DNA of 64,000 nucleotides from Mytilus californianus (GCF_021869535.1 NW_026262669.1:8804001-8868000), one strand, 5' to 3'; counted from the stretch's first letter, positions 7,201-59,146 are shown. Program-made: numbers and translations. Notes: a model not told the origin generated them from the letters alone.

Positions 7201-10200
7201 CCTTCAGAACTGTTAGTTTTTAAAAAAAAACAAGTGTTACAAAAAAAAACATAAAGAAAAAAAACAAAAATTTATATGGAATCAGAACTGTCCGTTTTTA
7301 ATAGAATTAAGAAATAAAAAAAAAACATATCTGAATTAACATGTCATCATCAAATTCTTTTTAGCAAGTAAATGGCTTACACAATTATGTTCATGTCATA
7401 AATCGTTAGAAGCCATGCTAGAGAAAACCAGGCATAACTTGAAAATCTTGTTCAACAAGAATTTACGGGAAAAAAATCTGTTTGCATTAAGTGCACTCTG
7501 TTTTGTAGGGAAATGTCATTGTTAACACTCATCTTGGGTTATTGTGGTTAGATATTTGATTTTAATTTTTCAGTAGATTTGACTGCCTATATAGCGAATT
7601 ACGGGTCTTATTTTCTTAACACAAACAGTCTACTATAACAGAAAATAATACTTATTCTAAATACTGACGATAAGTACATCAGAAAATGATAATAATATCT
7701 CTGGTATTTGTTGATATGTAAATTAACTTATGCATTAAGTTGTCTGGAAGTAGTACTTTGTTTTTATCTTTTTGGTATTACTTAACAGTACTAAACACGA
7801 TGCTTTGAAATGTTGTGATGTTTTGATGTAAACATGGTAAAAATGAATTTTTGTTGCACATTTTGATATATATTTAAACATCCTAATATGATTACACATT
7901 GTGTGCTGTTTGGAAACGTATGTCCTCACAAGGAGATCTTAGACGGAGATTGTAGCATGTCTACATGTGATAATGAAATCTTAGAAACTTAGACACATTC
8001 TGTACATGATTATAGATAAAGGTATAGCATTTATTACACATGGATTAATAGTCATACGTTTATTTGTTTTTGATGATAAAGTGGGAAATCTTACAGTCCA
8101 CACAACCATACAACAATACTTGGGTCCATCACCGACTATGGACACCAAAGAAAGATGTAAATGCCATAATCCTAGGCATTTGGAAAAAGGAAGGAGAATC
8201 ACTTTGAATCAGTTAAAACAGGTACATATAGTTCTAATTTATTATCGGCTGTAAAGAGAGTTCCGTTCCTGCAAACAAGAAATTAAAAAAAAAAATTGAA
8301 ATTATTACTGACATAAATTGATCCAAATAGGAATCATACATTTGCATTTTGGGCTCACTGACCAGGTTCAGTTTTCACTATGATCCTGAAAGATATTTTA
8401 CAATGCAATTATGTTTAGATAGCTAAAACAAATGCATTGCCGCCTGCAAAGAAGCTATAAAACCAGGTTTAATCCACCATTTTCTACACAAGAAAACGTC
8501 TGTACCAAATCAGGAATACTACAGTTGTTTTCCATTCGTTTGATGTGTTTAAGCTTTTGATTTTGCCAATTGTTCAGGGACTTTCCGCTTTGAATTTTCC
8601 TTGGTGGTCGGTTTTTTTGTTGATTTACTTTTTATGAACATCAAGATTGTTTTTTGTATGTTTGTTATGGATAGTTTCTGCTTGACAGCCTGTATTTTCA
8701 TATCCATACCAGAGATAGGATCAAAATTTATTGCAATGGTAACAAACGTTTCTCTTCCCACGAACGTTTCCATTTAATTTGATATGAAGAATGAGTTGAA
8801 AAGCATCTGATTTTCATTTAATTTGATTGATGGATAAATGTCAAAGTTTTCAGATTCCAGAAAAGGTACACAATGTACATGTACACTATACCTTATCATG
8901 TTCATGTTCTAATGTTGACCAAATTTTAGGGAATCATGTGTCATTTTCATGTCCCTTTGTGTTGCCATTGATAAACATTAAAGTAATATAGCACTTGTTT
9001 AACTATCGGAAATCCAATCTAGCAATGTCTAAGCTATGCATGAATATACTGGTATGATAGTCGAACTTTTCCACACAGTATGACACAAACATGTACTGTA
9101 AGCTTAATTTGTTAAAAAGCACAACAAGAGAATTGTTTAAAATTATGAGGGTAAATTCTTTTTTTGTCCACAATTGTAAAATGCTACATGTACCTATAGC
9201 TTCTTCGAAAGCACAACTATTGGACTGTAATTGATATTTAGATTATCCATCCATTTCTGATGGGAGGTCTTAAAGGATGGCAATCTTATCATACACTTTT
9301 TTTCTTTTTTCTATGTCAGTCTTACTTTAAACATGTTAAAAGAAATATGTGAAAAATTTCATATACAAATATTGAAACAGGAAAGATTTAAATCCTATGA
9401 AAATGAATGATGCTCAGTGTTCATTGAATGAGTTATACCCCTTCATGACCAATAGTGCTGACACGGGACTTAATCATTACCAATCAATCAGTCCCTTCAG
9501 AGCTCTACAATAAGGCTTGTATAATTTGTCGCTACAAGACCAACATATCTCAAAAGACAAATTATAAGTAAGGACAGTATAGAAGATCTGGATCATACAA
9601 TAGATACATGTATTTAAAATGGATGCATACGTACATCAAAATTGTAAATCTCTAACAAGATCTTCAGTTTAATAGTAAATGAACATGTAGTAAGATGATA
9701 GGTCATGGTATATATTTTCCATGTGTTCTGACGCTAACAAAATTATGATATTTAATTGTAAATGCAAAGTTCCAAATTCAAATTCCAAAAAAACTTATAA
9801 CATTTTATGATTATTTTTTAAACTGGTTGATGACACTGACTAAGAGGAAGCTATAATAGAGAGAAAGATATCAATTTGAAGTTGAAATTAATCTACTGAA
9901 TATAAAAAAAAAATAATTTAGAATCTCCTAAAGGTGCATTTACATTCATTAAGACGGAGTCTACACCATGTAAGAAAAAGTATGTGGATTGATCCGAATC
10001 TAAAATCCCTGCATAATGCACATCAAAATTAAAATGAGCACATGATACGCCCATCGCCCTTTTTGCTCATCTTTATGCTTTAAGGATGTACTCAGGTGAC
10101 AAAATCTGGAATTTAAAATTGATACTTTAAATCAGAAGTGCATTAGTTAAGGAACAAAATAAAAGCAATACAGTACAAAGTTATAATGTTCCACGATGTG

Positions 10201-19170: not shown

Positions 19171-20430
19171 GATTTAACACATTGGTGTCAGTGCTCATAA
19201 CTAAAGGGTCTGACATTTTCATTTTCTCCCCACAATTGACCATAAGGGTTCGTATCATAGATGTTTTTGGGAGTTGAAATATATGCCAGTCGACTATATG
19301 TACAGTTTAGGGTTGATGATGTGAATAGTTTTCAAGATCTTTTAAGTATAACGATATATGATATAAATGGAGCGAGGCATGTCGCTGAAGGACAATACTA
19401 TGGTAAACTAGATTGGTTTATCAAGGCAAATAAAACTATGAATGTTTAAAGGAAGGAGATTTGTATCATTTTTGAGATATTTACTAATTTATTTGTTTTG
19501 AAGGCAGGGGATAATCTGAAGGTACACATTTTTACTTGCATTGGAATGGTCTTGTCATGGCAAGAAAGAACATGCTGTTCAGAAGTGTTTGCAATATTTT
19601 CATTATTGGGAAAATTTCGAAGAGATACAGTACTTGCAACCTTATGCGTTACTATTTGACGGGAACTTGACTGATTGGTGACGGAAGTTTGACTGAAGTT
19701 CGAACTGCCATTTGATTTTGATATTTTTCTACATCAGGATCGTTAATTTTCATAAAATATGCTGATTTTCAAGGAAAAGATACTAAATGTTTGTTCGCAT
19801 TGCTTAAGCATGGAAATATATCTTCTTTTATTTCAGAAATAATAAATGCCTTTAGATAAGTAATTTTGTATAAGATGTGATTAATTTAAGGATTAATATG
19901 CATAAACTTTGTTTTTGTTGATTACGAATGCAAGAATTTCTTTATTTTAATGATTGACCGCTCATGGAAAAAAAAATATTCACCTCTTTTTTGCCTGTGT
20001 ACGAACTTGAGTAACCATGTCACCTCAATTTTCCAAAATATTCTATAGAAACACCAAACAAAAAAATAATGGTGCTTTGAAACATCCAAGTTATATGATT
20101 ATGACCAAGACATTTTTTTCTGCAATTACATGTAGGATTAATTTCCTACAACTGTCAAAATCAAGGGAATATGTTTTTTCGATCCTTTTTCGTATGCAAC
20201 CGGATATGACGTAATATGATTTGGTGGTATTACACCTTTATTGAAAATGAAATTTGCAATAAATGATCATTTCATTTCATTTTTCAGAGCATTTTCGGAT
20301 TATTGTTCACAGTCGGGATTAACACCGTTTTAGCAATCTTCGTGTTTGAAAAAAGAATAAGCTAAACTTAAACGAAAATCACAATTTCTTAATAATATTT
20401 TAATTTAGTTGTATCTAACATTGAGAATGG
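19171..20430 (+). repeat. Recent near-identical tandem re-duplication of 16523-19170 with an internal ~1.4-kb deletion
   Basis: 19171-19695 is near-identical to 16523-17050, and 19696-20430 to 18440-19170; ORFs 16614/19261 and 18753/20017 translate almost identically. Confidence 0.88.
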
Positions 20431-21931
20431 AAATGGGGAATATGTCAAAAAGACAACAATCCGACCAAACAGCAGAAAACATCCGAACTCTGAATGATTA
20501 ATAATAAAATGTTGAGATTCTGTACTTGAACTATTCGTATTTTTCCACGGCGCCATTTTAATCGAATGAAACGCAAATAGGATTCCGTAATTTGTATGAG
20601 TGTGACGTAGTAGAGTTCAGTCCGTCGGAAAGATCAATCTTTCAGATCAGTCCGATCCGTCCGATCAGTCAAATATTTTTACTATAAGTCTGACGGATTG
20701 ATGACCCGAGTTAGACGTGAACTTGATTAATCGGTGACTGATCGATAACTGCTGATTAATCGCTAAAATAGTTACGTCTAAGGTTGCAAGTACTGTAGGC
20801 GTCGCAATAAAAAAATAGTATTAATTGTGATATCAATATTTGCCTGCAGCATGTCCTGAAATGGCAATAAAGAAAGTATATTTGTGGATTGTTTAACAAT
20901 CGCGATGATAAGTGCACGCAATAATTTCTGAATTGGAAGTTGACCTGGAAGGGTAAAGGTCAAAGTCAGAGGTTATATTCTACGGTACCCAACACACTAT
21001 CTTAAGGTGCTGCATCCATATGCCAAATATTAAAAGGTTATTTCAAAGGGTGAAAAGGCTGTTTCCAACATAACAACATGTAGGACTAATGACCTACTGA
21101 CCCATTAATTGAGAATCTTCGTCTTTTTTCTAATTAACATGATTAAGTACTATTATGGTGAAGATATATACAACAGAAACAAACTGTTTTTTGAAAAATA
21201 CACCGAGTAATGGTTGGTATGGTAACCGAACATAAAATAGGGGAGAAGGGACTACATTTCTTTATTATGATCGATTACTTGTATCATGTGTATACAATAA
21301 ACATTCTAAATAAATGGCATTTTGCAATTTGATTCATGTAATATAATTTCAATTTGCCAAAGCATAGTTTTTCTCATATCATATAATGTTCACGACATTT
21401 TGCATTGTTTTTTTTTACTTTTTTTATGCAAAAATTAAAAGAGATACCCAACATTTTTTGTTTTTAACGCTAACATAGTACTAGACTGCCATATAGGTAG
21501 TAAAGCCGTGAGTGTTGGTTTCTTCAGGTGATAAATAGTTAAAAACTGATAAAAAAAAATTGCTCTATTTCTTATACATTTCAGTGATAATTCGTCGTTT
21601 AAGCTCTTATATTGAATTTCATAAGAACAATGTCAAATTCACTAACGATTGTAAAAAATATCAAATATTCACGGTCAGTATGCTATACTGATTTGGTAAA
21701 AGATATTTTTTTAACGAATTATTTGTGTTTCAATGAACACTCCTGCCTTGTGCCCTCTGGCACTGCCTCTTAATAGGTCCTTTTAACCTGACTAAGTACG
21801 ATGATATACGTAAAAATAAGATCCAAGTTTATGTAATTCTAATACATATCGGTTGTCATTTATACAATATGATTCTGTGTTAATTCAGTATAAAGAGTAG
21901 TAGAATAAGACTGAGAAGATATAAAACATCA

Positions 21932-21975: not shown

Positions 21976-22493
21976 TAGTCAGTCGGTTTTTTTCTGTTAA
22001 ATGTCACTGTATTTTTTTTTTTTTTTTTTGGTAAACTAATGTATCCAATATATGTATAAGTTAAGACAAATTAAAAAATAAATACAATTTAACAAGTATT
22101 TGTTGTTTTCAAAATTGTTTGACATCAGATCTGTTTAGTTTAAATATTAATATCTAACTAAGAATATAAACATATCTTGATTTTATCAACAAGTACTATG
22201 AGATGTGTATCCACAAAAGGAATCAGAATCCAAATTCACCATAAAGTATTTGATTCAGATCCATATTGTGAAATGTAAAAACTTCAATCAGAACTGTCAT
22301 TTAAACATTGTTTTATTGATGCCTTTCGATGAGTTACATTAAACCTGTAAAATTACTGTTATCTGACAAAGGAGTTTAAAGTGAAACAACAAAAATATCG
22401 AACTCCGAGGAAAATTCAAAACGGTAAGTCCGTAATCATACACAATCAATCGCTCAAACACATTAAACGAATGGATAGCAACTGTCATATTGT

Positions 22494-26500: not shown

Positions 26501-28301
26501 GAAGAATAGTATACTTGTAAATTATCTAACAATTGGACATCTGTCAAATCGACAAAATAATCCCAAAATGCCTTTAGTTTTACGTCTCAAAATTGCTCTG
26601 TACTTTTCTATTTTTGTCCAAATTAAACAATCTCAAGTGATTTTTTCGGGGAAAAATAATTTTTCTAACATAATGCAACTGTTTATAATTATTTCCTTAC
26701 TATCCCTAACAGGGGTCCTGCAAAAATAGGATCAAATTTGAAAAATATGTGTAATGTAGTCATGTTTTACAAACAAACACAATAATGATCTTTTTCAAAA
26801 TTCTTGAAAAAGTCTTTCAGCAAAATACGTTCGTATACATTTATAGCTTAATTTGTTTGTATTTCAGATGACTGAACACGATGAAAAAACCCGAATAAAA
26901 TTGTAACAATTTAGGACTATTAAAATGACCAATAACATTTCAATATCTTTCAAATTATGGTTTGTATAACTTGACTTTTGTTTTTATTCTTAAGGCAAAA
27001 AAAGTAGGAACGATCAAATATCATATTTACCGGTAATTATTTGAAAATGGAACAATATATATTCAAAAACTAATAAAAGAAAAAAAAATGAAAAATAAAA
27101 TATGATTAGCCAAAAAAAAAAAAAAAACACACTATATGTCAATTTGGTGTGTCTTTGGTAATGTTGTATAGTACTTTATTTTGCTTGTTCTCAATTCTAT
27201 TGATCAAATAAACAAACAGTTATAATATTCATACTTAAACCAAGCATTTGTCATATTGTATGTTGCCCAGTTATCCATCTTATGACATAAGGAGTTGTGA
27301 TATGTTTGCCAGTGATACAGCTATCTACCACAAATTTCGTTGTGCTATTTTCAGATCAGTAATTTTTTAGATTTTAGAGTGAATCAGGGTCGTTGTGACT
27401 TAATGCAACAATCTGCTGTAGCCACACTCTGATTTGTATATGGTACAAGTGTTGAAGATAAAAAGTGCTTCTGGTTCCAAAAGTTTAGAAGAACCTGCTT
27501 CTATGGCAGATTATAAATCTAAGCATATGTGGTATATTTGCAATGAGGATACTATTCACCACCAGAGACGTTAACAACTATATTTCACCGTCCTGCTTTC
27601 ACAACGTCACAAACCCATGAAAAGTCACGTAACGTTATCAGCCACCTGTTATTCAATGTCCAATTATATCATGCGGTAAAATAAAGTATAATATTTGTTC
27701 ATAACTGGTGGAAATTCAGTTGTATATTATGATATATAAAACATGTAGATTTGTTTGCGTAAAATGTATTATTTAGGTAAAATCCCGTTTAGAATTGCGT
27801 TCTTTCTTCACACAATTTTCTTTTCATTGCATTGATCTCAATTGAAATTAATGCTCTAAGAGGCCTGAAAAACATTAGATCATAATACGCATTTCAGATT
27901 GCAGAGTTTATATTTCGTCTTATTAATGAACAATACTGACTGCAGTATGAACATTATGTTATTTGATTAAATCTTATTGTTTCACATTGAAAGGGAAAAT
28001 ATGAACATGCAAAGCAAGCATATTTCTGCCCATTAGAACACAGATAGTGTCTCATCCCATGTTCGTTACTAGGTTTTATTTCATATATGCCTGTCTCAGA
28101 ATGTATGTGTTGTCGAAAGTTTTCCTACATCCCTTTTACCTACATGCCCTGCTGTAGTTTTCCTTTACAGAAAGAAAATGTTTAAAGATTCCGGTACATT
28201 GTAGTCATGGCAACCGAATAATCAATGTAAAAACAAACATAAATTAGTTATTTAGAGTTATCTTAGCTACAATTACATACTGATTAATTAAAACAAATAT
28301 A

Positions 28302-28325
28302 CAGTACTCGCAAGGACATACTGAG
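28302..28325 (+). repeat. Left terminal inverted repeat of the Tc1-like element
   Basis: CAGTACTCGCAAGGACATACTGAG, preceded by TA; reverse complement of 34161-34184 with 2 mismatches. Confidence 0.92.
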
Positions 28326-28333
28326 AGACATGA

Positions 28334-28394
28334 CCGACACAGTCTTCGCCCGACATGGGGTTACCGACACAGTGGCCGACACAGTGACCGACAT
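28334..28394 (+). repeat. Subterminal cluster of five CCGACA(CAG/T) motifs in the left arm
   Basis: CCGACACAG at 28334, 28364 and 28376; CCGACAT at 28350 and 28388. Confidence 0.8.
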
Positions 28395-29683
28395 GTCAGG
28401 TTAATTAATCTACCTAACACCTGCGGTGTTTGACCTCTTCACACAACTATTCAAAGTCATAAACGACACCTGATTTTACGTATGGACAGTGATCAGGTCT
28501 TATCAGTTATTTTACCTGTAGCTGTATCTCGATAAGATATTTATAGAAATGTATTCATGGTGTATTTTTGATTTGTAATAATTTATTTTTCAGGTTGAAT
28601 GACAGATTTTACAATCAGCTTCTTTTTTTGTTGATTACCTTTAAAATTTCGTCATAATTATGAAAAGCCTTCGATTACGCTATTCAAAACAGACGAATTA
28701 CTCTCGTGTAAAACCACGTGTCGTGTGATTTAATGGGAATAATATTTAAGTAAATATTTCTTTTCGATTTTAAACTTTTCCCGATTACCTTTTTTTTTTT
28801 CTTTTGAATGAAGATTGCGATGTTCTAAAATATAGCTGACCGATGTTTTTCATTGGTGTTTGTTGTTTTGTTTATCAATTATTATAGAGCAATGTATGGT
28901 GCATGTCCATTTGTTTGATTTACTGTTAATCAATACGCATGTACGTAAAGGCAGCAGACGATTTGTGTACGACCACGTGTCGTGTGATTTTAAAATGGGA
29001 AGTTATTTCTTGTGTTTTTATTTGCCACAAAAAAAAACTAAAGTAGACAGTTCAAGTAGCATATTTGTTGATTTAAAAAATCTGATTTTATGTGTACACC
29101 AAGTTTTTGTAAGAAGGCTACTTTTAAATGACATTTATAACCCGAAAGACGAGATCGTGTGTCTGTTTGGTTTATTATGTAATGAACCACAGGTACTCTG
29201 GTGGGCAGTTGATATAATTATTTTTATCTTTCTTGTTCATTCGTTAAATAAAAAGTATCACAAAAATCGATATTTTATTCATTACTAGAAAAAAAAATGC
29301 AATTAACTATGACCCCCTTTATAGCTATTCATGCCCGTAGATTGAAAAGTCCTTATACGGACATGGATATTAAATTGCTGATAGCTTGATTATTATTGAT
29401 ACCGAAGTTAATATTTTAATACAAATGTACAGGAAATAAAAAAAAAACAAACAAATACCATTTTCGTGTTCTCATCTTACCCCATTCAAAAGAGGATAAA
29501 CTTGATAAAGATAAGTGTTTTTTGTTTTGTTATCAAACTTTCAAGATCAGTTTGTACACTCGAAAATAAATATAAATAATATCCGGACAAATTTAATGAC
29601 AGAAATATGTGATATTTAATTGTACATTGTACATAACATATATTTATCAAGCAGTTTTGTCAATAATCTTCTTTCTATCCTGA

Positions 29684-31460
29684 TTACTTTCGATGAACCG
29701 GTCTTCTTAAAAGCTGATTCACTTTAGAGAGCACTCTTTCATTGAAGGCTTTATCACACATGACTTCTGGGAATACCGTAACTACGTATCTTCTGAGAAA
29801 CTCTCTTTTCTGTCTGTTTAGGGGATTCTTATTTAGTAAAACGTATACATCGTTCTTAGATTGTCGGACGTAAATAGTTCTGGGAACAGAATCGGCATAA
29901 TGTGGCATGCAAAATTTCCTGGTCCTTTAGAGGAGTGGATAGCTCTTGAGAGATCGTTCTCGGAGATCAAAAATTGTTCTGGAATGTCCGAAAATAAACT
30001 GTACGGCACAGTAAGGCTTTGTCTCATCGGCGGGGTTGACATGTTAAATCCAAATGTTGGCGAAAATGTATTTCTTTGCTCAAGTGTTGTAATGTGAGAC
30101 GTTTTAGGAGTTAAAGGTATATCCGGCAAACGTGATGAATGTGATGGTAACGGAGACGGTACGTCACTTTCATTTTCAACAGCATCTATGAGTGACCGAC
30201 GAGCTGTAGAAATTCTTTGTGTATTCTCCGACTCTTGGGGTTGAAGATGCCTAGTCACGAAAGCAAATAACTTTTCGATGGTCTCCTGCTGTTTGAGTAG
30301 CATGCGTTCTAATAGAGATGAACGAGATTGTTAATTTCCACTTGCTTTAAAATTTCTACCAAGTCATTGTCTGATGAAAAGGCTTGTCTTGTCTTTAGAA
30401 CTGGGGATTTGTCCTTTCCATTACACTCCGGCTCAGGTTCGGGTTCCACTTCCTCAATTGGCGATGTTGGTGCTATAAAATGAGGAGGAAGCTCAGGGGA
30501 TGGTGTCGGTGATCTAAATAAATATGGGTCGTTATTCCCATCTCTAATATCTACAAGTGATGCTTCTGGTTTCTGAAAAAAAAATTAAAATATAAATATA
30601 TTATATTAACTGACAACTTACAGATGCAGTTGCATGGGGTATAACTAAAAAAAACTACTTCTAGTGTGGTGACGAAAGTTATTTTGTTACTGTCGTGTGA
30701 CAAATATTACAAAACAGATTCTATTAAATACGTTAAAAAAATACTTTATATTAACTTTTTTTTAAAGAATAAAAATTGTCAATTACTGAGTGTAGAATAT
30801 GAAGTGAACGTTGTTTATTTAAACCAACTAATCAATCGAACTACATGCATGTATTCATAAACAAGTTTTATTTTCTATTTATATTTGATAACATTTGATC
30901 ATATTAAATATGAAGAAGAAAAAAATAATCATATGCAAAATAAACCGAGACAGATTTTAAAATAAAATATATCTAAAAAAATACTTACACTCCGTTCAAC
31001 ATCTTTAGGTTTTGTATTCCGTTTTCTTTTTAATGGCTTTGTCAAAGCAATGGGACTTGGTAAAAAGTAAAATCACAAAAATACTGAACTCCGAGGAAAA
31101 TTCAATCGGAAAGTCCCTAATCACATGGCAAAATCAAATGGCATCACTGACTGGACTTGAAGGTGGTGTCTCAACTGATTCTGTAGATACGTTTGGCGAG
31201 TCCGTTGTTTGCTCTAACTTCTTTTTGCATTCTTGCTCTTTTCTCCTCATGTCAAGCCATTCACCACTTTTTAAAACTGTTGCCTCATCTTTGTCTCCAT
31301 CTTTGTCACCCCAATGAACAAGATATTTCTCACCAATGCGAATACGTCCATCTATGATAATTTTGAATCTTGGACATACATAAAATCTCAAATTTGCATT
31401 TTCATCATCAAACTCGACCAGGAAATGACTTGCTTCTCGAGTCTGAAGTCTTGAAGACAT
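29684..31460 (-). pseudogene. Two-exon BEN-domain (BEND3-like) gene inside the transposon, ~425 aa when reconstructed, disrupted by three lesions
   Basis: Exon 1 is 31460-30989 (MSSRLQTREASHFLVEFDDE...KPKDVERS|GTAAGT) and exon 2 is 30572-29684 (TTTCAG|KPEASLV...RRPVHRK*). The GT-AG intron at 30988-30573 is phase 0/0 and frame-consistent. The C-terminus reads KGPGNFACHIMPILFPELFTSDNLRTMY..KNPLNRQKREFLRRYVVTVFPEV..RVLSKVNQLLRRP, matching the BEN consensus (GNFA..L...LFPELFT.ENLR..Y..K..LD......IR.YV...YP......I....RRP). Lesions: ~79-bp repeat insertion at 31061-31139, frameshift near 30325, frameshift near 29840. Confidence 0.85.
31061..31139 (-). mobile_element. ~79-bp fragment of an abundant host interspersed repeat inserted in exon 1 of the BEN gene
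   Basis: The sequence (ACTCCGAGGAAAATTCAATCGGAAAGTCCCTAATCACATGGCAAAATCAAA) matches the repeat found at 22400, 40095, 60505 and, inverted, 8560. It introduces TGA at 31134-31136; removing it restores the frame SSPVSDA-PSPIALTK. Confidence 0.85.
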
Positions 31461-32261
31461 TTTTCTTAACTGGCGATGTTGTGCGATGGTATAAGTTTTT
31501 TTAATGCGTATATTTTGACACAAACAATTGTCATGGGAATAACTAAAATATTGAATTGACACTTCCGTATAATTGTTTGCACCTTATTACAATGTACAAA
31601 CGTAAATTGTCAAAAGGTTTATTGCCATTTTGATAATCTTGTATCAAAAGCGGAAGGTATTGCATTTGCACTGACACCTTAGGCCATATGTGTGCCATCT
31701 TCGATGTGAGAAAACAACTAGATTAAGAATACACATCAAAAAAATCATCATTTTAATACATTAATCATAATATCTTGTAATGGGAGTAAATTAAATAAAC
31801 CTTAATGAACTTACTAATGCATACAATTGATACATATTTGTCCATAAATATTTTTTTTTATCAGTTTATATTGACCTTAGAATACCTGACCAGCTGTCGT
31901 CACGGTCTATGGATGCACTCAGTATTTATCGTGATCATAAATGGGATAAAACGAGGAAATTGCAATTTTATATTTTCTAAGGGAGGTTTAAAAATAGTTT
32001 TTTTTTCTGAAAAGTCTAGTGCACTTTTTATATAAATGTTAAAAAAAGTTGCATTTTAAAATTTTAAATCAGTAATATGACATTTAAAATTTATTTATTA
32101 GTGTACACATTTGAAGTTTGTTAAATGTCTCGTGTCAGATGATACATTTCCGGTACCCTAAAAATCACGCTGACAATAAATGATCACACAATTATGTCAT
32201 TCAATTTTATTATTTCTATAAAAAACAAATATTTTTTTCTAAAAATTAAATCATTCCGAAA

Positions 32262-33398
32262 ATGCCGAAATTCAAACTAACACATCATGACAATATGAAA
32301 ATTTATTCTCTGTACCAACAAGGATGGCCCGTGCATGCCATATTACGAAAGTTGTCCGCTGATGGTATAGATATTTCTTGGGGATCTGTTAAAAATGTGA
32401 TTATCAAGTACCAACATGGTCGTACTGGATATGAACATTTGTCAAGAAAGAAAATCCCGACATTTAAAAGTATTACAGATGCAGATATTGATTTTGTAAA
32501 ATCTACACTTGATGAAAATCCAACTCAAACATGCAATGACATTATGCGTCGTTTATCAGACAAGGGCACAATTACAAAAAAATCTACCGTTCGAAAAATG
32601 ATAGATTCAGCCGGATACACTGCATCAACACCTCGTTATGGACAAATGACTCGTGAGGCAAATAAATTAAAGAGAGTTGAGTTTTGTAAGCAACTTATAA
32701 CAGTCAATGAACAATTTGACGATATCATATTCACAGATGAGGCAACCGTTCAACTTCACGATAACAAAGTTGTTATATACAGAAGAAAGGATTGCGTTGC
32801 TCCTGTACTGCCGAAGCCAAAGCATCCACTAAAAGTCCACGTTTGGGGAGGCATTAGCCGACGTGGTACCCCTCAAATTTTGATCTTTGAAGGTATTCTA
32901 AAATCCGATTTCTTTGTGAATACTATACTACGACTTGGACTTTTGCCATTTATTAGACAAACTTATCCAGATCAGCACAGATTTCAACAAGACAATGACC
33001 CAAAACATCGTTCCAATCTTAGTAAGAGGTTTATGCAGGAAAACCAAATTAACTGGTGGGATATTTGGCCTTCTGAAAGCCCAGACTTTAATCCAATTGA
33101 AATGGTTTGGAGTATGATGAAGCAGCGGTTAAATAAGAAAAAACTTTCAACTAAGAATGATCTAACCAGTGGAATTAAGGATTTTTGGAAAAATGATTTA
33201 ACTGTTGAACGATGCAACACTTTTATTGACCACAATTTCAAGGTATTACCAGTGGCTGTGTTTATTGGTGGACGTGCAACAGGGGATTTACCGCAAAAGA
33301 TTTTCCCAGAGAGATCAAGGTCGAGGTCATTAAGTTATTTTAATGATCAGTTTGATTTAGAAGAGGTGAAAGAGAGACTTGCAGCAGTGAAATACTGA
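32262..33398 (+). CDS. Tc1-like DDE transposase, 378 aa, DD35E catalytic spacing, apparently intact
   Basis: Uninterrupted ORF with an N-terminal helix-rich (paired/HTH-like) region and Tc1 motifs IIFTDEA (D159), KHPLKVHVWGGIS, FQQDNDPKH (D244) and WPSESPDFNPIEMVW (E280). There are 35 residues between the second D and the E. AATAAA lies at 33422. Confidence 0.95.
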   Translation: MPKFKLTHHDNMKIYSLYQQGWPVHAILRKLSADGIDISWGSVKNVIIKYQHGRTGYEHLSRKKIPTFKSITDADIDFVKSTLDENPTQTCNDIMRRLSDKGTITKKSTVRKMIDSAGYTASTPRYGQMTREANKLKRVEFCKQLITVNEQFDDIIFTDEATVQLHDNKVVIYRRKDCVAPVLPKPKHPLKVHVWGGISRRGTPQILIFEGILKSDFFVNTILRLGLLPFIRQTYPDQHRFQQDNDPKHRSNLSKRFMQENQINWWDIWPSESPDFNPIEMVWSMMKQRLNKKKLSTKNDLTSGIKDFWKNDLTVERCNTFIDHNFKVLPVAVFIGGRATGDLPQKIFPERSRSRSLSYFNDQFDLEEVKERLAAVKY

Positions 33399-34160
33399 TT
33401 TAACAGAAAAACAGAGTCATAAATAAACAGTCCTTTTAAGGACTACCAAATTATTCAAAAAGAGTCTAAAATGTTGTAGTTTGTATGATGAGTGTCTTCA
33501 GATATATATTACTGTAATTCATTCTTTAAGTCATTCTTCTCTATTCCATAACTTTAATTTGTCTTTTCTTTATAACTGAACACCTTACAATATTTGTTTG
33601 GCCCATGTTTCAATATTCTTAATTTCCCCATCTAAACCTATATTTTAGTTCACCAATATTCTCTATTCTTTGTTTTTTGCTAGAACGATTTTCTCTATAC
33701 TTCATTTTTTTTTTGCCTATTATTCTATATTCTGAATATGATATAATTAAATGTGAGCACCCTTCTTCTGTAAAACAATATTAGGTAAAAAAAACAAATA
33801 AACAAAATAGAAATAAAAAGAAATAAAAAGAAATAAAATGAATAGAATTAAACTGAAAAAGCATATATCATGTTAAAAAGCTCAGTTTCTTTATTGAAAT
33901 AATTGAATCATTTATTTTCTTCTTCCCCTTTGGATAATATTTTTAGTACCTGTAAAAGAAGCAAAATTTGAAATTATCAGCTGATAACATATTTGTAAAC
34001 AAGGTTTTATAGTTATCATGGTTATGTAATCTAACAGATTATCATTCATGCTCCTTGATTCAGGTAACCTTAATTATTAAACAGCATGAGATCACACCTG
34101 GTTTTTGTGTCTGTCCTTAAGACTGTCATGTCAGACACAATGTCTCTCAAAGTTATCAAT

Positions 34161-34184
34161 CTCAGTATGTCCTTAAGAGTACTG
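34161..34184 (-). repeat. Right terminal inverted repeat of the Tc1-like element
   Basis: CTCAGTATGTCCTTAAGAGTACTG, followed by TA. Confidence 0.92.
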
Positions 34185-34745
34185 TATATCCCCCAACCCC
34201 TCCCCCCTCACCACAAAAATTAAAAAAAAATACAACATTATGTCAAATTTTAAAACTACAATAGATGAACATACATGTGTAAAATTGAAAAAAAAAGTTT
34301 TAAGAAAAGCCGAAAATAACAAAAATAATCATAGTTCTGTTCTTCTGCAGAATCTAGCAAAATAACTTGTCTGGGTGTTTTGAATTGATGTATACTTCGC
34401 AAAAATGCAAAAAAAAAACTCATTTTGACCCTCGTACCTCAATAGCCTCGAAAACCTCATTAATGGTCAACTAATTCCGCTCCACAATCATCTACGAGCC
34501 CCTCTGCATAGACATGCTCTATCTTCATGGCACATATCAGTTCAAAATATATCCGGTTAAGCGGTGGGAATCTCAGTAAAGTTTGACATAATTAACGAGT
34601 TGAAGGGCAGGGGCATGACCCCAAGCAAAAAAAAAAAAAAACAATTGCGTACGGAAACAGAATTGTTTATAAACGTAAATTATTCATTATTGAGGGATTC
34701 GAAACACTTGCATTTATATTCTACACTAGCAATAACTAAAAAAAT

Positions 34746-34955
34746 GTTTGTTGTGACAGGTATAAACTTCAATCATAACTGTCATTTAAAAAAAAAATGT
34801 TTTGTTGTGACAGGTATAAACTTCAATCATAACTGTCAGTTTAAAAAAAAATATTTTGTTGTGACTGGTATAAACTTCAATCATAACTGTCATTTAAAAA
34901 AAAAAGTTTTGTTGTGACAGGTATAAACTTCAATCATAACTGTCGTTAAAAAAAA
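34746..34955. repeat. ~54-bp tandem repeat, 4 units
   Basis: TTGTGACAGGTATAAACTTCAATCATAACTGTC starts at 34751, 34805, 34859 and 34912. Confidence 0.92.
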
Positions 34956-39724: not shown

Positions 39725-40900
39725 CACAACATTTGGAACTATTAAGTCTACCTCAAGTTCAACTAAGTTTGTGGCCTCGATTTGTAAACGAATGAAATTC
39801 TATAACCGTCCAAAGTATGAAAATGGAGTTTTCAACGATTTTTCAAAGAATAAAGTTTCATAACTTTGCAATGTCTTATCAAAAATTTATAAAAAAAGAA
39901 ATTATTTCAATAGATATAGTCACCAAAGTTTCATGGAAACTGCTCAAAGCGTTTTATAGTTATTGTCCGAAAACGGGAAAATCCCACCCTTTTATGAATA
40001 AATTCCTAATGCTCAAAAAAGTGATATCAGAATTTGTTTTTCAAATGAAAAGGAACGTATGTCAATAAACATATATAAAAATTAAACTACAAAATTCCGA
40101 ACTCCAAGGAAAATTCAAAACGGAAAGGCCCTTATCAATTGGCAAAATCAAAACCTCAAACACATCAAACGAACTGAAAAAAAAACTGTCATATTCCTGA
40201 TTTGGTACAGGCATTTTCTTATGTAGAAAATAGTGAATTAAACTTTGTTTTATAGCTAGCTAAACCTATCACTCGTATGATAGTCGCATAACATTTCATT
40301 ATATTGACAAACATGTGTGACCAAAACAAACAGACATAATAGGTGAAAAATGTCAAAAAATCGGGGTACAGCAGTCAACATTGTGTTATAATCTCAATCA
40401 CTATAGAAACAAACAAATATGTAAATAAAGAAAAACAGAATGCCATATAGACAAGGCATATACGCAACATTGAATCACAAGATTACAACAAATGACAACA
40501 GCACAACAACACAATGGCGGGATGTACAAATACCAATCCACGTCTAAAGGAGATTACCAAAAATGGACCAAACAGTCAACGTTAATAATTTACAAAGACA
40601 AATAAACAAACACTATAACACGTAATTAAGATGATAAACAACGTCCGTACCTAGAATCTATATATCAAGACCATCGTGTATTATTTGTGAAGTTGATACG
40701 GAATATTTATCAACAAGGTCTTGGTATCTTCCGATGAACTTTTTTAGAAAAAGGACGAGACAATTCAACAAAGTCTCATGCAAATTGGAGAACGCGTCTT
40801 TGAATTATTGTCTGAAGTGTGGACGACAGACGGACATACGGTCGGACAATGGTATACCATAATACGTTATGTAAAAGGGCGTATACAAATCACAGATAGC
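39725..40900 (+). mobile_element. Degenerate bivalve HINE/DINE-1-like (non-autonomous Helentron-type) element with a nested host repeat (40080-40745)
   Basis: CCAAAGTTTCATG..GTTATTGTCCG core, a short GACGGAC-type tract and an ATACCATAATACG..GGGCGTATA terminus. Paralogs lie at 49600-50215 and 14935-15075. The classification is from recalled family architecture only. Confidence 0.45.
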
Positions 40901-52200: not shown

Positions 52201-53689
52201 TTTCCTCAAACTAATGTATATAATTAACGTATCATTTGAGACAAATCCAAATATAAATGCAATTTAACAATATTTGATGTTTTCACAAACTGTTTGACAT
52301 CAGATCTGTTTAAAAAATAATATCTAATTAGAATATAAACACAACTTGATCTCATCAACTTCTTATAAACAAATAAAACTAGATGTTTACCAAAATATCC
52401 GAAAACAAAATACAGCATGTATCATTTGATTCAGATCCATGTGGTGAGATGTCAGAACGTCCATCAGAACTGTCCTTTGAAACATATGTTTAGTAAGAAA
52501 TGTGTAAAATATCAATATCATATGTTTCTTTTTGATAAAACGATTAAATTAAGATCCAATTTGAGATACTTCTTACAAGTATTTGCTATTATTAAAAGAT
52601 GATTAACTTTAGAGCCGACTATCGAATTTATATTATATGACTAAGGTATTAACACATAATGTTCTTTCCAAATTCTTAAGAGGAAGTTAAATCATATCTT
52701 AATAACATAATATTTTTCATAAAAAACTTGGTCCTTTATCATGTTTATTATCTGATACAGTTTGACCAGACAAGTCAAATGATTATCCAACATAAATAGG
52801 TAAAAATCAATTCATAACATGTATCAGACACATATTGTGAACTGTCAAAACTTCAATCAGAACTGTCATTTGAAACATTTTTGTAATAAATGTATAAAAT
52901 TATTTAACACATTGGTGTCAGTGCTCATAACTAAAAGGTCTGACCTTTCCATCTTCTCCCCACAATTGACTACAAGGGTTCGTATCATAGATGTTTTTGG
53001 GAGTTGAAATATTTGCCAGTTGACTATATATATATAGTTTAGGGTTGATGGTGTGAATAGTTTTCAAGATCTTTGAAGTATAACGATATATGATATAAAT
53101 GGAGCGAGGCATGTCACTGAGGGACAATACTATGGTAAACTAGATTGGTTTATCAAGGCAAATAAAACTATGAATGGTTAAAGGAAGGAGATTTGTATCA
53201 TTTTTGAGATATTTACTTATTTTTTTTGTTTTGAAGGTACACATTTTTACTTGCATTTGAATGGTCTTGTCATGGCAAGAAAGAACATGCTGTTCAGAAA
53301 TGTTTGCAATATTTTCATTATTGGGAAAATTGCGAAGAGATACAGTACTTGTAACCTTATGCGTTACTGTTTGACGGGAACTTGAATGATCGGTCACGGA
53401 AGTTTGACTGATCGATGAATGATCGGTGATCGATGACACATAGTTTCCGTCAGATACGTCAAACAAGCTTTGTGAGAGTAACCGTGACAACGGTCAGCGA
53501 TCGATCAGCAAATTATTAAATGCACAGATCGGACGGATACGTATATAATTAAAACTCTTATGTCAAACGAACTCTTTGTTCAAAAGTCATAAATCAATTA
53601 AAAGAATACACATCCGGATTACAAACTAAAACCGAGGGAAACACATCAACTATAAGAGGAAAGCAACGGAACAAAATAAACATGAAATT

Positions 53690-56000
53690 GTTGATTTTGG
53701 TACTTTTTCTACATCAAGGTCGTTTGTTTTCATAAAATATGCTGATGAAATTTTGGGAAAAGATACTAAATTTTTGTTCGCATTGCTTAAACATGCAAAC
53801 ATATCTACTTTTAAATCAGAAATAATGCAACATCTTGCAATCAGTAATTATACATGCCTTTAGATAAGTAATCGTGTATAAGATATGAATAATTTAAGGA
53901 TTTATATGCATAATCTTATGTTTGATTAAGAATGGAAATTATTAACCGCTCATGGGATTTTTATACTATTTGGACACCAGGATGGGTTGTTTTTTTTCTT
54001 CGCAAAATTAAATGAATATCAAAGGAAAGATATTAAAATGTTGTTTGCATTGTTTAAAATTACCTATATTTCTTGTTTTATATCAGAAATAATGCAACAC
54101 CATTTGCAGTAAGTTATTATAAATGCCTTTAGATAAGTAATTTTGTATAAGATGTGAATAAAATAAGGATTGATATGCATAAACTTTTGCATTGTTTAAA
54201 ATTACCTATATTTCTTATTTTATAACAGAAATGATGCAACACCATTTGCAGTAATTTTGTATAAGATGTGATGAATACTATAAGGATAAAGATACCTAAA
54301 CTTTTGTTTGAGTAGCATACGAATGCATTTATTTCTTTGGTTTAATAGAAATCATGAACCTCCATTGGATTTTAGTATTTTTTGTACATCAAGCTGGGTT
54401 GTTTTTTCACAAAATTAAATGAACATCAAAGAAAAGATACTAAAATGTTGTTCGAATTGTTTGAAATTTCCAATATTTCTTCATGTTATCAAAAATAATG
54501 CAATGCTATTTGTAATTAGTTATTTCAAAGCCCTCATGATCACATTTTTTCTAGAATTTCTTAATGATATAAGGAGAAAAATACTTAAACTTTTGTTTGT
54601 GGTTGATAGGAACAAAATAATTTCTTTATTTCATTAGAAATTACGAACTGCCATTTGATTTTGGTATTTCTGCTACATCAGGATCGTTAATTTTCATAAA
54701 ATATGCTGAATTTCAAGGAAAAGATACTCAATTTTTGTTCGCATTGCTTAAGCATGGAAATATATCTTCTTTTATATCAGAAATAATAGATGCCTTTAGA
54801 TAAGTAATTTTGTATAAGATGTGATTAATTTAAGGATTAATATGCATATACTTTGTTTTTGTTGATTATGAATGCAAGAATTTCTTTATTTTAATGATTG
54901 ACCGCTCATGGAATTTTTGATTCTTTTTGTACATCAGGATGGGTTGTTTTTTTTTCACAAAATAAGAATATCAGAAGAAGGATATTAAAATGTTGTTTGC
55001 ATTGTTTAAAATTATTTATATTTCTTCTTTTATAACAGAAATAATGCAACACCATTTGCAGTCAGTTATTATAAATGCCTTTAGATAATTAATTTTGCAT
55101 AAGATGTGATGTATACCATAATTATAAAGATACCTATACTTTTGTTTGAGTTGAATATGAATGCATTTATTTTTTTTGGTTTAATAGAAATCATGAACCT
55201 CCACTGGATTTTAGTAGTTTTTGTACATCAGAATGGGTTGTTTTTCACAAAACTAAATGAACATTAAGGATTAGTTATTTCAAAGGCCTCATTATCATTT
55301 TTTTAATATCTTTATGATATAAAGAGAACAAATACTTAAACTTTTCATTGTGTTGAATAGGAATGAAATAATTTTGTATTTTAATATAACTTATTAACCG
55401 CCATTTGATTTTGGTACTTTTTCTACATCAGGATCGGTAATTTTCATAAAATATGCTGAATTTCAAGGAAAAGATACTAACTTTTTGTTCACATTGCTTA
55501 AAATGGCAAATATATCTTCTTTTATATCAGAAATAATGCAACGTCATTTGCAATCAGTCATTATAAATGCCTTTAGATAAATGATTGTGTTTAGGATGTG
55601 AATAATAAAAGGATAAATATACTTAAACTTTTGTTTGTGTTGAATAAGAATGCATTTATTTCTTTAATTTAATGGAAATCATGAAACCGCCATATGATTT
55701 TAGTACATTTTGTACATCAGGATTGGTTGTTTTTCATTAAATTAAATGAATGTCAGAGAAAAGATACTAACATGTTGTTCGCATTGTTTAAAATTACTTA
55801 TATGTTTTCTTTTTATAAAAAATAATGCAATGCTATTTATTATAAGTTAATTAAAGGTTCTTAAACTTTCGTGTGCGTTGAATAAAAATTGAATTATATC
55901 TGTATTCCAATGGTTAAATTGTTTAAAAATACCAATATTTTTTCGTTTTATAAAAAATATTCACTGTTGTTAGCAATCAGTTATCTAAATTGCCTTTTGA
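53690..56000. repeat. Internal degenerate ~250-300-bp tandem array inside non-autonomous element copy 2 (more units than copy 1)
   Basis: The same marker recurs at ~53711, 53975, 54387, 54676, 54931, 55225, 55425 and 55713. Confidence 0.75.
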
Positions 56001-56324
56001 TAAGTAACTTTTTATAAAATATGAATAATATAATGATTAAAATATTAAACCTCTTCTTTCTGTTGAATAAGAGTCCATTTTTTTTTCTTCTCATTAAGAT
56101 TTAATTACACGAAGACTGTCATTGGATATATTGCACCTTTATTGAAAATGAAATTTGCAATAAATGATCATTTCATTTCATTTTTCAGAGCATTTTCGGA
56201 TTATTTTTAACAGTCGGGATTAACACCGTTTTAGCAATCTTCGTGTTTGAAAAAAGAGTAAGCTAAACTAAAACGAAAATCACAATTTTTTAATAATATT
56301 TTAATTTAGTTGTATCTAAAATTG

Positions 56325-57700
56325 AGAATGGAAATGGGGAATATGTCAAAGAGACAACAACCCGACCAAAGAGCAGAAAATATCCGAAGGCCACCATAGG
56401 GTCTTCAACACAGCGAGAAAATCCCGCACCCGAAGGAGGTCCTCAGCTGGCCCCTTAACTAAATTGTGTACTAGTTCAGTGAAAATGGACGTCATACTAA
56501 ACTCCAAATATATATATGAACTAAAATATAAAAAAACATACAAGACTAACAAAGGCCAGAGACTCCTGACGTGGGACAGGTGCAAAAATGCGGCGGGGTT
56601 AACAATGTTTTGTGACATCTCAACCCTGCCCCTATACCTTTAGCCAATTTAGAATAAACAAACACACAGCAACACGCACAGTAAAAATCAGTTCAAAAGA
56701 AGTCCGAGTCCGATGTCAGAATAGGTAACAAAAGAAACTAAGCAAAATGACAATGATACATACATGAACAAAGGACTACTAGCAGTTACTGACATGCCAG
56801 CTCCAGACCTCAATTAAACTAATTGAAAGATTGTGTCTTCATTATATGAAAATCAAGCACAATCCCTCCCGTTAGGGGTTTAGTATCATGCCATCATAAC
56901 ATATATGAGAAGAACATAACTTGTACCATGCCAACAACTGGTTAAAGAACAAATGTGTTTATTTCTGATGCAAACACCCTAAGAGTGAATCAATATTAAT
57001 ACCAAAATATGCCATCTTTAATAACCTGATAACAGTCTCTTAACTATATCCCTTCTGAATACGTCTGTTTAAAGGTTTGGTTTGCTTTTGAGGTGAATGC
57101 CGACATTTTTGTACTTTGTAAAGAATATTACAATAAAAGATTGGATGTGAAATACCTGAACATATAACATGTCTGCATGTTGATTTATATTTACGAATGA
57201 TGTTCTTGTACCAATGATAAATTTTAGTAAATGTTTTGTCTAGTTTGTGATATCGAAGACCCTAGTGTAATAATTCAGTAATACAGAGATTTATTTCGTT
57301 AAAATCAAATACGTCGTTACATACACGAGCGAATCGAACAAGTTAAAATATATAAACACCATCAGATGGTGACAAGGGAACGTCACCATCTAAAAATGGA
57401 TAATTTACAATAGAAAATGAAAAATCATCTCTTTTATCATAAATTTTGGTATTAAGCTTCCCGTTAAATATATAAATATCAAGATCTAGGAAAGGACAGT
57501 GTTCATTGTTAGTATAAGCATTATTTAAAGTCAGTTCAGCAGGATTGATCTCTTTAGTGTACATACTGAAATCGTCATTATTGAGAGCCAATATATCATC
57601 AAAATATTTAAAAGTGTTATTATATTTTTGGATCAGATGTTGTTTCGATTGGTTTTTGCATATTTCTCTTCATATGGATCTCTGCATATTTCTCTTCTCT
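56325..57700 (-). mobile_element. Penelope-like retroelement fragment (RT C-terminal part plus 3' region)
   Basis: Reverse strand 57660-57343 reads TFKYFDDILALNNDDF..EINPAELTLN..CPFLDLDIYIFNGKLNTKIYDKRDDFSFSIVNYPFLDGDVPLSPSDGVY, with a YxDD motif and a Penelope-type C-terminal signature. Only its first ~70 bp remain in the paralog at 20420-20490. Confidence 0.75.
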
Positions 57701-59146
57701 TTTAATTCTGAATGATTTATAATAAAATGTCGAGCTTCTGTACTTCAACTATTCGTATTTTTCCACGGCGCCATTTTAATCGAATGAAACGCAAATAAGA
57801 TTCCGTAATTTGTATGACGTAGTAGAGTTCAGTCCGTCAGAAAGGTTAATCCGTCCGATCAGTCCGATCCATCCGATCAATCAAATATTTTTACTATAAG
57901 TCTGACGGATTGGTGACGCGAGTTTGACGTGAACTTGAGTAATCGGTGACTGATCGATAACTGCTGATTAATAGCTAAAATGGGTACGCCTAAGGTTGCA
58001 AGTACTGTAGGTGTCGCAATAAAAAAAGGTATATATTGTGATATCAATATTTGTCTGCAGCATGTCCTGAAATGGCAATAAAGAAACTTGTATATGTGTG
58101 GATTGTTTAACAATCGCAATGATAAGTGCACGCAATAATTTCTGAATTGGAAGTTGACCTGGAAGGGTAAATGTCAAGGTCAGAGGTTATATTCTATGGT
58201 ACCCAAAACACTACCTTAAGTTGCTGCATACATATGCCAAATATTAAAAGTGTATTTCAAAGGGTGAAAAGGCTGTGTTCAATATAACAACCTGTAGGAC
58301 TAATGACCTACTGACCCATTCATTGAGAATCTTCGTCTTTTTTCTAATTAACATGATTAAGTAGTATCATGGTGAAGATATGTACAACAGAAACAAACTG
58401 TTTTTTTTTAAATATACCGAGTAATGGTTGGTATGGTAACCAAAAATAAAATAGGGGAGAAGGGACTACATTTCTTTATTATGATCGATTTATTATATCA
58501 TGTATATACAATAAAAATTCAAAATAAATGGCATTTTGCAATTTGATTCATGTACTATAATTTCAGTTTGCCAAAGCATAGTTTTTCTCATATCATATAA
58601 TGTTCACGATATTTTGCAATGTTTTTACTTTTTTATGCAAAAGTAAAAGAGATACCAAACATTTGAATTTGTTTATTGTTTTTTTAAGACTAACATAGTA
58701 CTAGACTGCCATATAGGTAGTATAGCCGTTAGTGTTGGTTTCTTCAGGTGATAGATAGTTAAAAACTGATAAAAAAATGGCTCTATTTCTTATACATTTC
58801 AGTAAAAATTCGCCGTTTGAGCTCTTATATTGAATTTTATAAGAACAATGTCAAATTCACTAAAGATTGTAAAAAATATCATATATTCCCAGACAGTATG
58901 CTATACTGATTTGGTAAAAGATATCTTTTAACGAATTATTTGTGTTTCAATGAACACTCCTGCCTGGTGCTCTCTGGCACTGCCTCTTAATAGGTCCTTT
59001 TAAGCTGATTAAGTACGATGATGTACGTAAAACTAAGATCCAACTTTATGTAATTGTAATACATATCGGGTGTCATTTAAACAATATGATTCTGTGTTAA
59101 TTCAGTATAAATAGTAGAATAAGACTGAGAAGATATAAAATATCAC

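Follow-up and report, generated by a model that had tools for sequence, protein, structure and literature searches.

Tc1/mariner elements are the textbook minimal transposons, consisting of one gene and two short inverted repeats, and it is because of this simplicity that they have been used as vectors, as in Sleeping Beauty, Mos1, and Himar1. A segment of the genome of the mussel Mytilus californianus raises the question of whether a member of this superfamily can also own a second gene. Positions 28302-34184 of a stretch of 64,000 nucleotides (nt; GCF_021869535.1 NW_026262669.1:8804001-8868000), the whole of which is referred to here as the window, contain a transposase gene of the DD35E type and, on the opposite strand, a gene for a protein with a BEN domain, both lying between the same pair of terminal inverted repeats (TIRs). 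This segment is a decayed copy of a two-gene Tc1/mariner (DD35E) family of Mytilus, and comparison with related elements indicates that the second gene is part of the element lineage and co-diverges with the transposase. The existence of a clade of Tc1/mariner elements that has conserved an accessory gene is well supported, both structurally and evolutionarily; the mechanism is one that we infer.

The element is 5.9 kilobases (kb) long and holds the transposase gene on the plus strand and the two-exon BEN gene on the minus strand, head-to-head inside one TIR pair. At its ends is an inverted repeat of 30 nt (28297-28326 and 34160-34189, 93% complementary), within which the element proper runs from 28302 to 34184 and has TIRs of 25 nt, with 23/25 positions matching. 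The left TIR is CAGTACTCGCAAGGACATACTGAGA, and its right-end counterpart differs at 2 positions. In the 64 kb this pattern is found at the two ends only, where shuffled sequences predict 0 occurrences. A TA precedes 10/10 of the family termini, from 7 loci with flanks that are otherwise unrelated, so that the Tc1/mariner hallmarks of a TA duplication and short TIRs beginning CAGT (here CAGTAC) are present. A previous reading of the window, made from the sequence only, had described one TIR pair enclosing both genes with TA on both sides, which is correct except that the repeats are 25 nt long and not 24. The divergent intergenic region of ~800 bp that it placed at 31461-32261 is as described, with the start codons of the two genes facing each other 801 nt apart. 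The features of the element, with the basis for each, are as follows.

28300-28301, no strand: left TA target-site duplication (TA before 10/10 family termini)
28302-28326, plus strand: left TIR, 25 nt, beginning CAGTAC (pattern unique to the two ends)
28331-28395, plus strand: subterminal array of five CCGACA, all on the same strand and spaced 12-16 nt
28396-29683, minus strand: left arm, non-coding, probably the 3' untranslated region of the BEN gene (kept in other copies; no third-position excess)
29684-30572, minus strand: BEN-partner exon 2, with its stop codon at 29684-29686 (BEND3-BD4-type match in intact same-family sequence; ratio of non-synonymous to synonymous substitution, dN/dS)
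30573-30988, minus strand: BEN-partner intron, GTAAGT...CAG, 416 nt (in-frame splice; intron in the same place in relatives)
30989-31460, minus strand: BEN-partner exon 1 (homologous N-terminal domains in full-length partners)
31067-31138, no strand: copy-specific repeat insertion of ~72 nt that adds a stop codon (missing from all other element copies)
31461-32261, no strand: divergent intergenic region, ~800 nt, presumed bidirectional promoter (position between the start codons)
32262-33398, plus strand: transposase gene, intact, 378 amino acids (aa), DD35E (uninterrupted open reading frame, ORF; Pfam; structure match)
33399-34159, no strand: right arm, non-coding (kept in other copies)
34160-34184, minus strand: right TIR (pairs with the left TIR)
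34185-34186, no strand: right TA target-site duplication (TA before 10/10 family termini)

The intact plus-strand transposase that had been read from the sequence is borne out by an uninterrupted ORF of 378 aa (32262-33398), with Pfam matches to DDE_3 (5.3e-14) and HTH_Tnp_Tc3_2 (8.9e-10), both over the curated cut-offs, and a match to the catalytic domain of Sleeping Beauty (5cr4) of 1.5e-16. The DD35E label also stands, the spacing between the second D and the E (D244 to E280) being 35 residues, as it is in three of the more distant elements considered below (L008, L011, and L012). The nearest transposases are those of Mytilus edulis, M. coruscus, and M. galloprovincialis, with 90-97% identity.

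The BEN gene has its ATG at 31460 and is made up of exon 1 (31460-30989) and exon 2 (30572-29684), with a 416 nt intron (30988-30573, GTAAGT...CAG) and a splice that joins ...ERS to KPEAS... in frame. An intron is present at the matching place between the exon 1 and exon 2 homologues in the TARA contig L009 and in the RefSeq models at the loci L012 and L013. The sequence-only reading had the splice junction, 30988/30573, exactly, and was right as to the anatomy of a spliced gene on the minus strand, but it put the ATG at 31461 and did not recognize that the gene is a pseudogene here, carrying three lesions. The first of these is the insertion at ~31067-31138 of a short dispersed repeat of ~72 nt that carries a stop codon, the second is a 1 nt deletion at ~30327 in exon 2, and the third is a 13 nt deletion at ~29838 within the BEN domain. 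All three are private to the window copy when it is compared with the other family copies. The BEN-partner gene is dead in the window copy, in which the transposase ORF is still open. Because of the lesions, the fragment left in the window reaches 17.7 bits against the Pfam BEN model, under the threshold of 23.2, and the BEN domain was called from intact same-family copies; of the two Pfam matches expected from the sequence-only reading, DDE_3 is over its cut-off and BEN is not.

The sequence at 31067-31138 was also considered as a small intron, which was rejected as it is a dispersed repeat that is missing from every other copy of the element. This repeat, which may be a fragment of a MITE or SINE, has a length of ~75-80 nt and 78-95% identity between copies and is present at 31060-31138, where it is the insertion breaking BEN exon 1, and at four further places in the window (8556-8634, 22378-22449, 40076-40152, and 60479-60554), as well as in the loci L001, L002, L003, and L011.

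There are seven further family loci in M. coruscus, M. galloprovincialis, and M. edulis that share the TIRs or the left arm, and BEN sequence is present in 6/7 of them. The M. coruscus copy L002 is full length and 96-97% identical, with the similarity ending exactly at the TIRs, and is at a different TA site. Also in M. coruscus, L005 has both ends and the entire BEN gene, most of its transposase gene having been removed by an internal deletion, and L006 is a more divergent copy with both genes. Internal deletions across parts of both genes are seen in L004 (M. coruscus) and L003 (M. galloprovincialis), while L007 (M. galloprovincialis) extends from the left end up to the transposase start. 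Only the M. edulis copy, L001, is without the BEN gene, which has gone through an internal deletion of the same kind that removes the transposase in other copies. The transposase-BEN pairing is not a one-off capture. The sequence-only reading had allowed that other copies might lack the BEN gene, or that it might be a single-copy host gene elsewhere without TIRs; instead, the same TIRs and BEN sequence recur in multiple copies and species, and every family locus recovered via the BEN protein is inside an element, with no TIR-less host locus of this BEN family among them.

These copies also bear upon the suggestion that two unrelated elements have become nested here by chance, or that the arrangement was produced by misassembly. 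The sole prior reason for such a suggestion is that mussel genomes often contain transposons inserted into one another. However, several assemblies and species have the same arrangement and ends, at TA sites that differ from one another, no second TIR pair was found around either gene at the element, and the layout is repeated in divergent families, which makes this explanation extremely improbable.

The set of frameshifts in the BEN gene differs in every copy, the lesions being copy-specific, and in a majority sequence of the seven copies, built only to fix the codon frame, exon 2 is open over 304 codons. A homologue search with the BEN alignment returned 6 proteins, among them P0339, a chimeric M. 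coruscus gene model that has an uninterrupted 234 aa stretch of exon 2. Public gene models in M. coruscus and M. galloprovincialis (P0339, P0129, and P0002) fuse element genes with neighbouring host exons, examples being a "microsomal prostaglandin-E synthase 2" containing a BEN domain and a 564 aa "transposase" spanning 43 kb. It is likely that some of the BEN-domain annotations in mussel genomes are transposon genes.

Between copies, dN/dS for BEN exon 2 is 0.13-0.32, a range taken from within-family copies only, since synonymous sites are saturated between the deeply divergent families. When L006 is compared with L003, exon 2 has 19/17/67 differences at codon positions 1/2/3, a strong third-position excess. 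The values for the transposase are 0.12-0.28 (13/10/31 differences in an example pair), and the non-coding left arm, treated as pseudo-codons for a control, gives 0.56-0.84 and no third-position excess (24/27/24 in an example pair). The dN/dS of the second gene across copies, proposed as a check in the sequence-only reading, is that of purifying selection, and the selection on the BEN ORF is as strong as that on the transposase. As the present copies are dead, most of this divergence must have built up while the BEN ORF was selected in active elements.

More distant relatives were sought with phmmer, using the intact C-terminal piece of the partner against 1.8 billion proteins. There were 160 relatives, with those checked by name being mostly from bivalves (Mytilus spp., Saccostrea, Ruditapes, Dreissena, and Sinanodonta) and many of the others being on metagenome contigs. 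Three further head-to-head lineages were identified: L008 and L011, both in M. coruscus, and L014. The first two are 5.85 kb and 6.5 kb, each inside its own TIRs with a CAGTAC start and TA flanks. L014, the sole locus from a metagenome scan with a BEN alignment of 5 sequences, is a head-to-head pair on a 4.2 kb contig, on which, being short, no ends are visible. In these three lineages the transposase is ~56-69% identical to that of the window and the BEN partner ~40-45%, and in DNA alignments to the window only the transposase genes of L008 and L011 align, at 64-67% identity. All three parts of the partner can be recognized in each lineage, and the gap between the two genes (~655-1270 nt) is in the same position. 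The head-to-head set forms a clade in the maximum-likelihood trees of both the transposase (100/100) and the BEN domain (99/98), the latter clade also including the TARA contig L009, and L008 and L011 are sisters in both. The agreement of the trees is what stable linkage predicts; this test of co-divergence is small, with four pairs only.

A different layout is seen in Ruditapes philippinarum, where L012:7562-15426 (JAKTTH010010557.1) is an element of 7.9 kb, flanked by TA, whose TIRs (CAGTACAGC...) are perfect. The gene for its DD35E transposase has a canonical GT-AG intron of ~2.9 kb, which splits the coding sequence between WPS and ESPDLNPIE. Exon 2 of the BEN gene (an open ORF of 306 aa) lies within this transposase intron, on the opposite strand, and the last exon of the transposase lies in turn inside the intron of the BEN gene (RefSeq model XP_060557367). 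The spliced transposase is an open ORF of 375 aa and the BEN model is intact, which would suggest that this copy may be active and makes it a candidate active two-gene element. In Saccostrea echinata (L013:10001-12146), the BEN exons are interleaved in the same way with C-terminal exons of a transposase. The RefSeq gene here, LOC133204293, encodes Tudor-like and BEN domains in 391 aa, and the transposase C-terminal pieces are on the opposite strand, within the intron of this gene and across the beginning of its second exon. Neither the N-terminal part of the transposase nor TIRs were found near L013, which may be a decayed or domesticated derivative. Both L012 and L013 lie outside the head-to-head clade in both trees, which means that either the association is older than the Mytilus clade and was later rearranged, or it arose more than once.

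The existence of two gene layouts could also be expected if the BEN gene were a passenger that an ancestral element had taken up from its host, with no role in the element and under selection for a benefit to the host. Many BEN genes are annotated as ordinary loci in bivalves (M. californianus, Dreissena, and Sinanodonta), and in the Mytilus copies examined the BEN ORFs are disrupted, as they might be in a passenger. Yet a dN/dS of ~0.2 between dispersed, dead copies requires that selection acted on the active element lineage. The pairing and its layout have persisted while transposase identity dropped below 60%, with the two trees in agreement, whereas a cut-and-paste element that had been nearly tripled in size by a gene of no use to it would be expected to lose that gene quickly. 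The passenger explanation is improbable on these grounds.

What the second gene might do for the element can be approached through its predicted protein. The product in the window's family is ~430 aa, and the full-length relatives, of 385-449 aa, have an N-terminal domain of ~70 aa, a basic KRKR-type stretch, proline-rich linkers, a heptad-like helical region, and a C-terminal domain. Exon 1 encodes the Tudor-like beta-barrel, a helix, and the basic stretch, which resembles a nuclear localisation signal, and exon 2 encodes the proline-rich region, a probable coiled coil, and a BEN domain of the BEND3-BD4 type. The BEN domain was established by phmmer with the 1.8-billion-protein library, by a profile search of PDB sequences, and by Pfam matches in relatives. 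Residues 177-410 of P0339, which are intact and from the same family, match BEND3 BD4 (7v9i) with an E value of 1.7e-14, and the family profile matches the BEND3 BD4 crystal-structure sequences at 2e-32. Pfam gave no BEN match for the intact same-family C-terminal piece L003:9140-9832, but relatives of the partner pass the Pfam BEN cut-off. By homology the C-terminal domain is a BEN domain (PF10523) of the BEND3-BD4 type, in agreement with the BEN identity and the remark on BEND3 in the sequence-only reading.

BD4 is the DNA-binding BEN domain of BEND3, recognizing YCCACGC via E807, R810, R814, and K815 (PMC8887127). Almost all members of the partner family have an arginine in alignment with R810; opposite E807 the family consensus is glutamate, with glutamine in the window's own family, and basic residues follow. 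Judged from the alignment, counterparts of the BD4 base-contact residues are kept in the partner, which is predicted to bind DNA. For the N-terminal domain, the AlphaFold2 model, of moderate confidence (pLDDT 77), is a small beta-barrel, with four strands called, and a helix. The top 14 structural matches to this model are all Tudor domains (KDM4A/B/C and ARID4A/B), although they are middling matches, with VIA Z scores of 4.9-6.2 (all <8), Foldseek E values of at least 0.1, and at most 32% identity over ~53 residues, and Pfam had no match for this domain. "Tudor-like" is thus to be taken as a lead and not as a settled assignment.

Possible binding sites for such a protein are present at the element ends. 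Of the 16 CCGACA matches in the window, five are packed into 60 nt next to the left TIR, on its inner side, and there is none in the divergent intergenic region at 31461-32261. In the M. coruscus lineages L008 and L011, with TIRs that diverge from those of the window beyond CAGTAC, the core YCCGAC, fixed in advance from the window before counting, has 4/7 and 3/8 of its locus matches within 90 nt of the ends (binomial estimates ~1e-6 and 1e-4 to 1e-5, respectively). L012 has a different CpG motif, CMCSGCG, of which 7/7 matches in 21.8 kb are within ~150 nt of the ends, although the motifs of both the window and L012 were chosen after inspection and their enrichment figures are inflated as a result. 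One TCCACGCG in L012 fits the BEND3-BD4 consensus YCCACGC. In other superfamilies, as in En/Spm, hAT, and P elements, arrays of motifs next to the termini usually point to an accessory protein or a transposase that binds the ends; to our knowledge, short arrays of this kind are not typical of Tc1/mariner. There are also two copies of CCACGTGTCG in the left arm (28714-28723 and 28973-28982), each within a duplicated block of ~35 nt. This sequence is kept in every family copy that holds the region, and within it is CCACG, which forms the core of the site bound by BEND3 BD4.

The reading preferred here, with a probability of roughly 0.6, is that the partner is an element-encoded nuclear DNA-binding accessory factor that acts on the element's own ends, possibly in a methylation-sensitive manner. 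The partner would enter the nucleus and oligomerise, and its BEN domain would bind the short CpG-containing motif arrays just inside the TIRs. Once bound, it might help to recruit or position the transposase, or it might pair the two ends. As the motifs contain CpG, the partner could link activity of the element to its methylation state. Both TnpA of En/Spm and the Myb-like protein of PIF/Harbinger work as end-acting accessory factors, the second being the parallel that the sequence-only reading had proposed.

It may instead be that the BEN partner is an element-encoded regulator outside the transposition machinery, either a repressor of transposase expression or transposition, or an anti-silencing factor that sits upon unmethylated CpG motifs and keeps the chromatin open. 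The closest solved relative, BEND3, is a sequence-specific repressor with a CpG-containing site and is autoregulatory (PMC8887127), and the partner's Tudor-like module is of a kind that reads chromatin marks. Purifying selection and co-divergence would fit any function that benefits the element. The location of the repeated motifs is against this explanation, these being at the element ends rather than in the divergent promoter, where CCGACA is absent, and in other superfamilies subterminal arrays usually mark end-binding proteins. A purely regulatory partner is considered unlikely, although it is the most serious of the alternatives.

Several observations weigh against the end-acting accessory factor, in addition to the inflated enrichment figures. 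Transcriptional repression is the role of most BEN proteins studied so far, and this would suit a regulator no less than a component of the transpososome. The right end in the window's family is without an exact CCGACA and has only degenerate TG/CA variants, and the motifs might just as well be additional sites for the transposase, as in Tc1 elements of the inverted repeat/direct repeat (IR/DR) type. The BEN ORF is broken in every Mytilus copy that can be read through the BEN region, whereas two transposase ORFs are intact; this could mean that the partner is dispensable, or it may reflect how the loci were found. The layout also differs between the Mytilus clade and Ruditapes/Saccostrea, and the association may have arisen more than once.

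A wider version of the accessory-factor reading can be put forward tentatively, and is thought somewhat more apt to fail than to hold. In it, the bivalve DD35E clade would be a true two-component system, in which a Tudor-BEN partner binds methylation-sensitive CpG arrays at the ends and is required for transposition, or gates it. The pairing would be old enough to have given rise to two layouts, one of them with the exons of each gene nested in the introns of the other, and the elements may be a source of BEND3-type BEN genes in animals.

Elsewhere in the window there are two non-autonomous elements, at 19628-20795 (1.17 kb) and 53343-58007 (4.67 kb), both with the termini CAGTACTTGCAAC. The first 12-13 nt of these are as in the BEN element, with nothing else in common, and they were rejected as derivatives of it because there is no match past the termini. 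They are related to one another, with 91-96% identity in parts, and their flanks are nearly identical (AAGAGATA ... TAGG[C/T]GTC), such that they look like one insertion copied via segmental duplication. The longer of the two contains internal repeats of ~550 nt with 76-81% identity. To the right of the BEN element, in the ORF at 34564-34917, a segment of ~18 aa is present three times (...FVVTGINFNHNC...), which reflects a tandem DNA repeat, with no obvious gene.

Among known systems, the closest parallel in organization is with PIF/Harbinger, where likewise there are two genes in one TIR pair, the second for a nuclear protein of the sequence-specific DNA-binding type (as is predicted here) that co-evolves with the transposase. 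PIF/Harbinger elements differ in having a 3 nt duplication and a Myb/SANT partner, in place of the Tc1/mariner transposase, TA duplication, and Tudor-like and BEN partner of the mussel element. For Harbinger3 the partner has been shown to be needed, whereas in the mussel element such a need is proposed. En/Spm (CACTA) elements similarly encode an accessory DNA-binding protein, TnpA, such as is proposed here, and have arrays of CpG-containing motifs inside the TIRs. They belong to an unrelated plant superfamily, however, in which TnpA comes from alternative splicing of one transcription unit and its binding has been demonstrated.

Within Tc1/mariner, Traveler (TR) is a DD35E group with elements of ~1.5 kb, a single ORF of ~340 aa, and TIR ends of CAGTC/CAGCC, found in vertebrates only (PMC7093834). 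It shares with the bivalve elements the DD35E spacing, the TA duplication, and short TIRs, but the bivalve elements are 5.9-7.9 kb and have two genes and CAGTAC ends. Traveler as the home family is not supported by element size, ORF number, or TIR ends, the two being set apart by this description rather than by phylogeny. The ciliate TBE/Tec elements are a Tc1/mariner-related group that also has more than one ORF, the extra ones encoding a zinc-finger protein, a protein of unknown function, or a site-specific recombinase (PMC7325037). They differ from the mussel element in their very long TIRs and their ciliate hosts, and in having no BEN or Tudor partner. The TLEWI genes of pteriomorph bivalves are intron-bearing, Tc1-like, and low-copy, with a DD36E transposase and no TIRs, and have been interpreted as domesticated; no BEN gene is mentioned in that paper (bioRxiv 10.1101/656579). 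The Ruditapes element resembles these in being a bivalve Tc1-like transposase gene with a spliceosomal intron but is DD35E and has perfect TIRs, and TLEWI was rejected as the home family, being DD36E, without TIRs, and presumably domesticated. In the case of BEND3, its BD4 (PDB 7v9i and 7w27; PMC8887127) is the best solved match to the partner C-terminus, and its target motif contains a CpG, but BEND3 itself is a vertebrate host repressor with four BEN domains, no Tudor-like domain, and no link to a transposase. Full-text literature searches found no paper on a Tc1/mariner element with a BEN partner, in line with the sequence-only reading, which knew of no such family; Repbase and Dfam were outside the scope of these searches, and prior cataloguing there is possible.

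If the partner is an accessory factor or a regulator of its own element, then the Tc1/mariner superfamily would be one that can also evolve accessory-factor dependence or self-regulation. There would be a natural function for BEN domains outside host transcription, and BEND3-type BEN domains would be linked to mobile DNA. Transposon genes probably account for many of the bivalve gene models that are chimeric or labelled "BEN domain-containing". The element of Ruditapes, which looks intact, would be a tractable system for the control of cut-and-paste transposition by an accessory protein and by CpG methylation.

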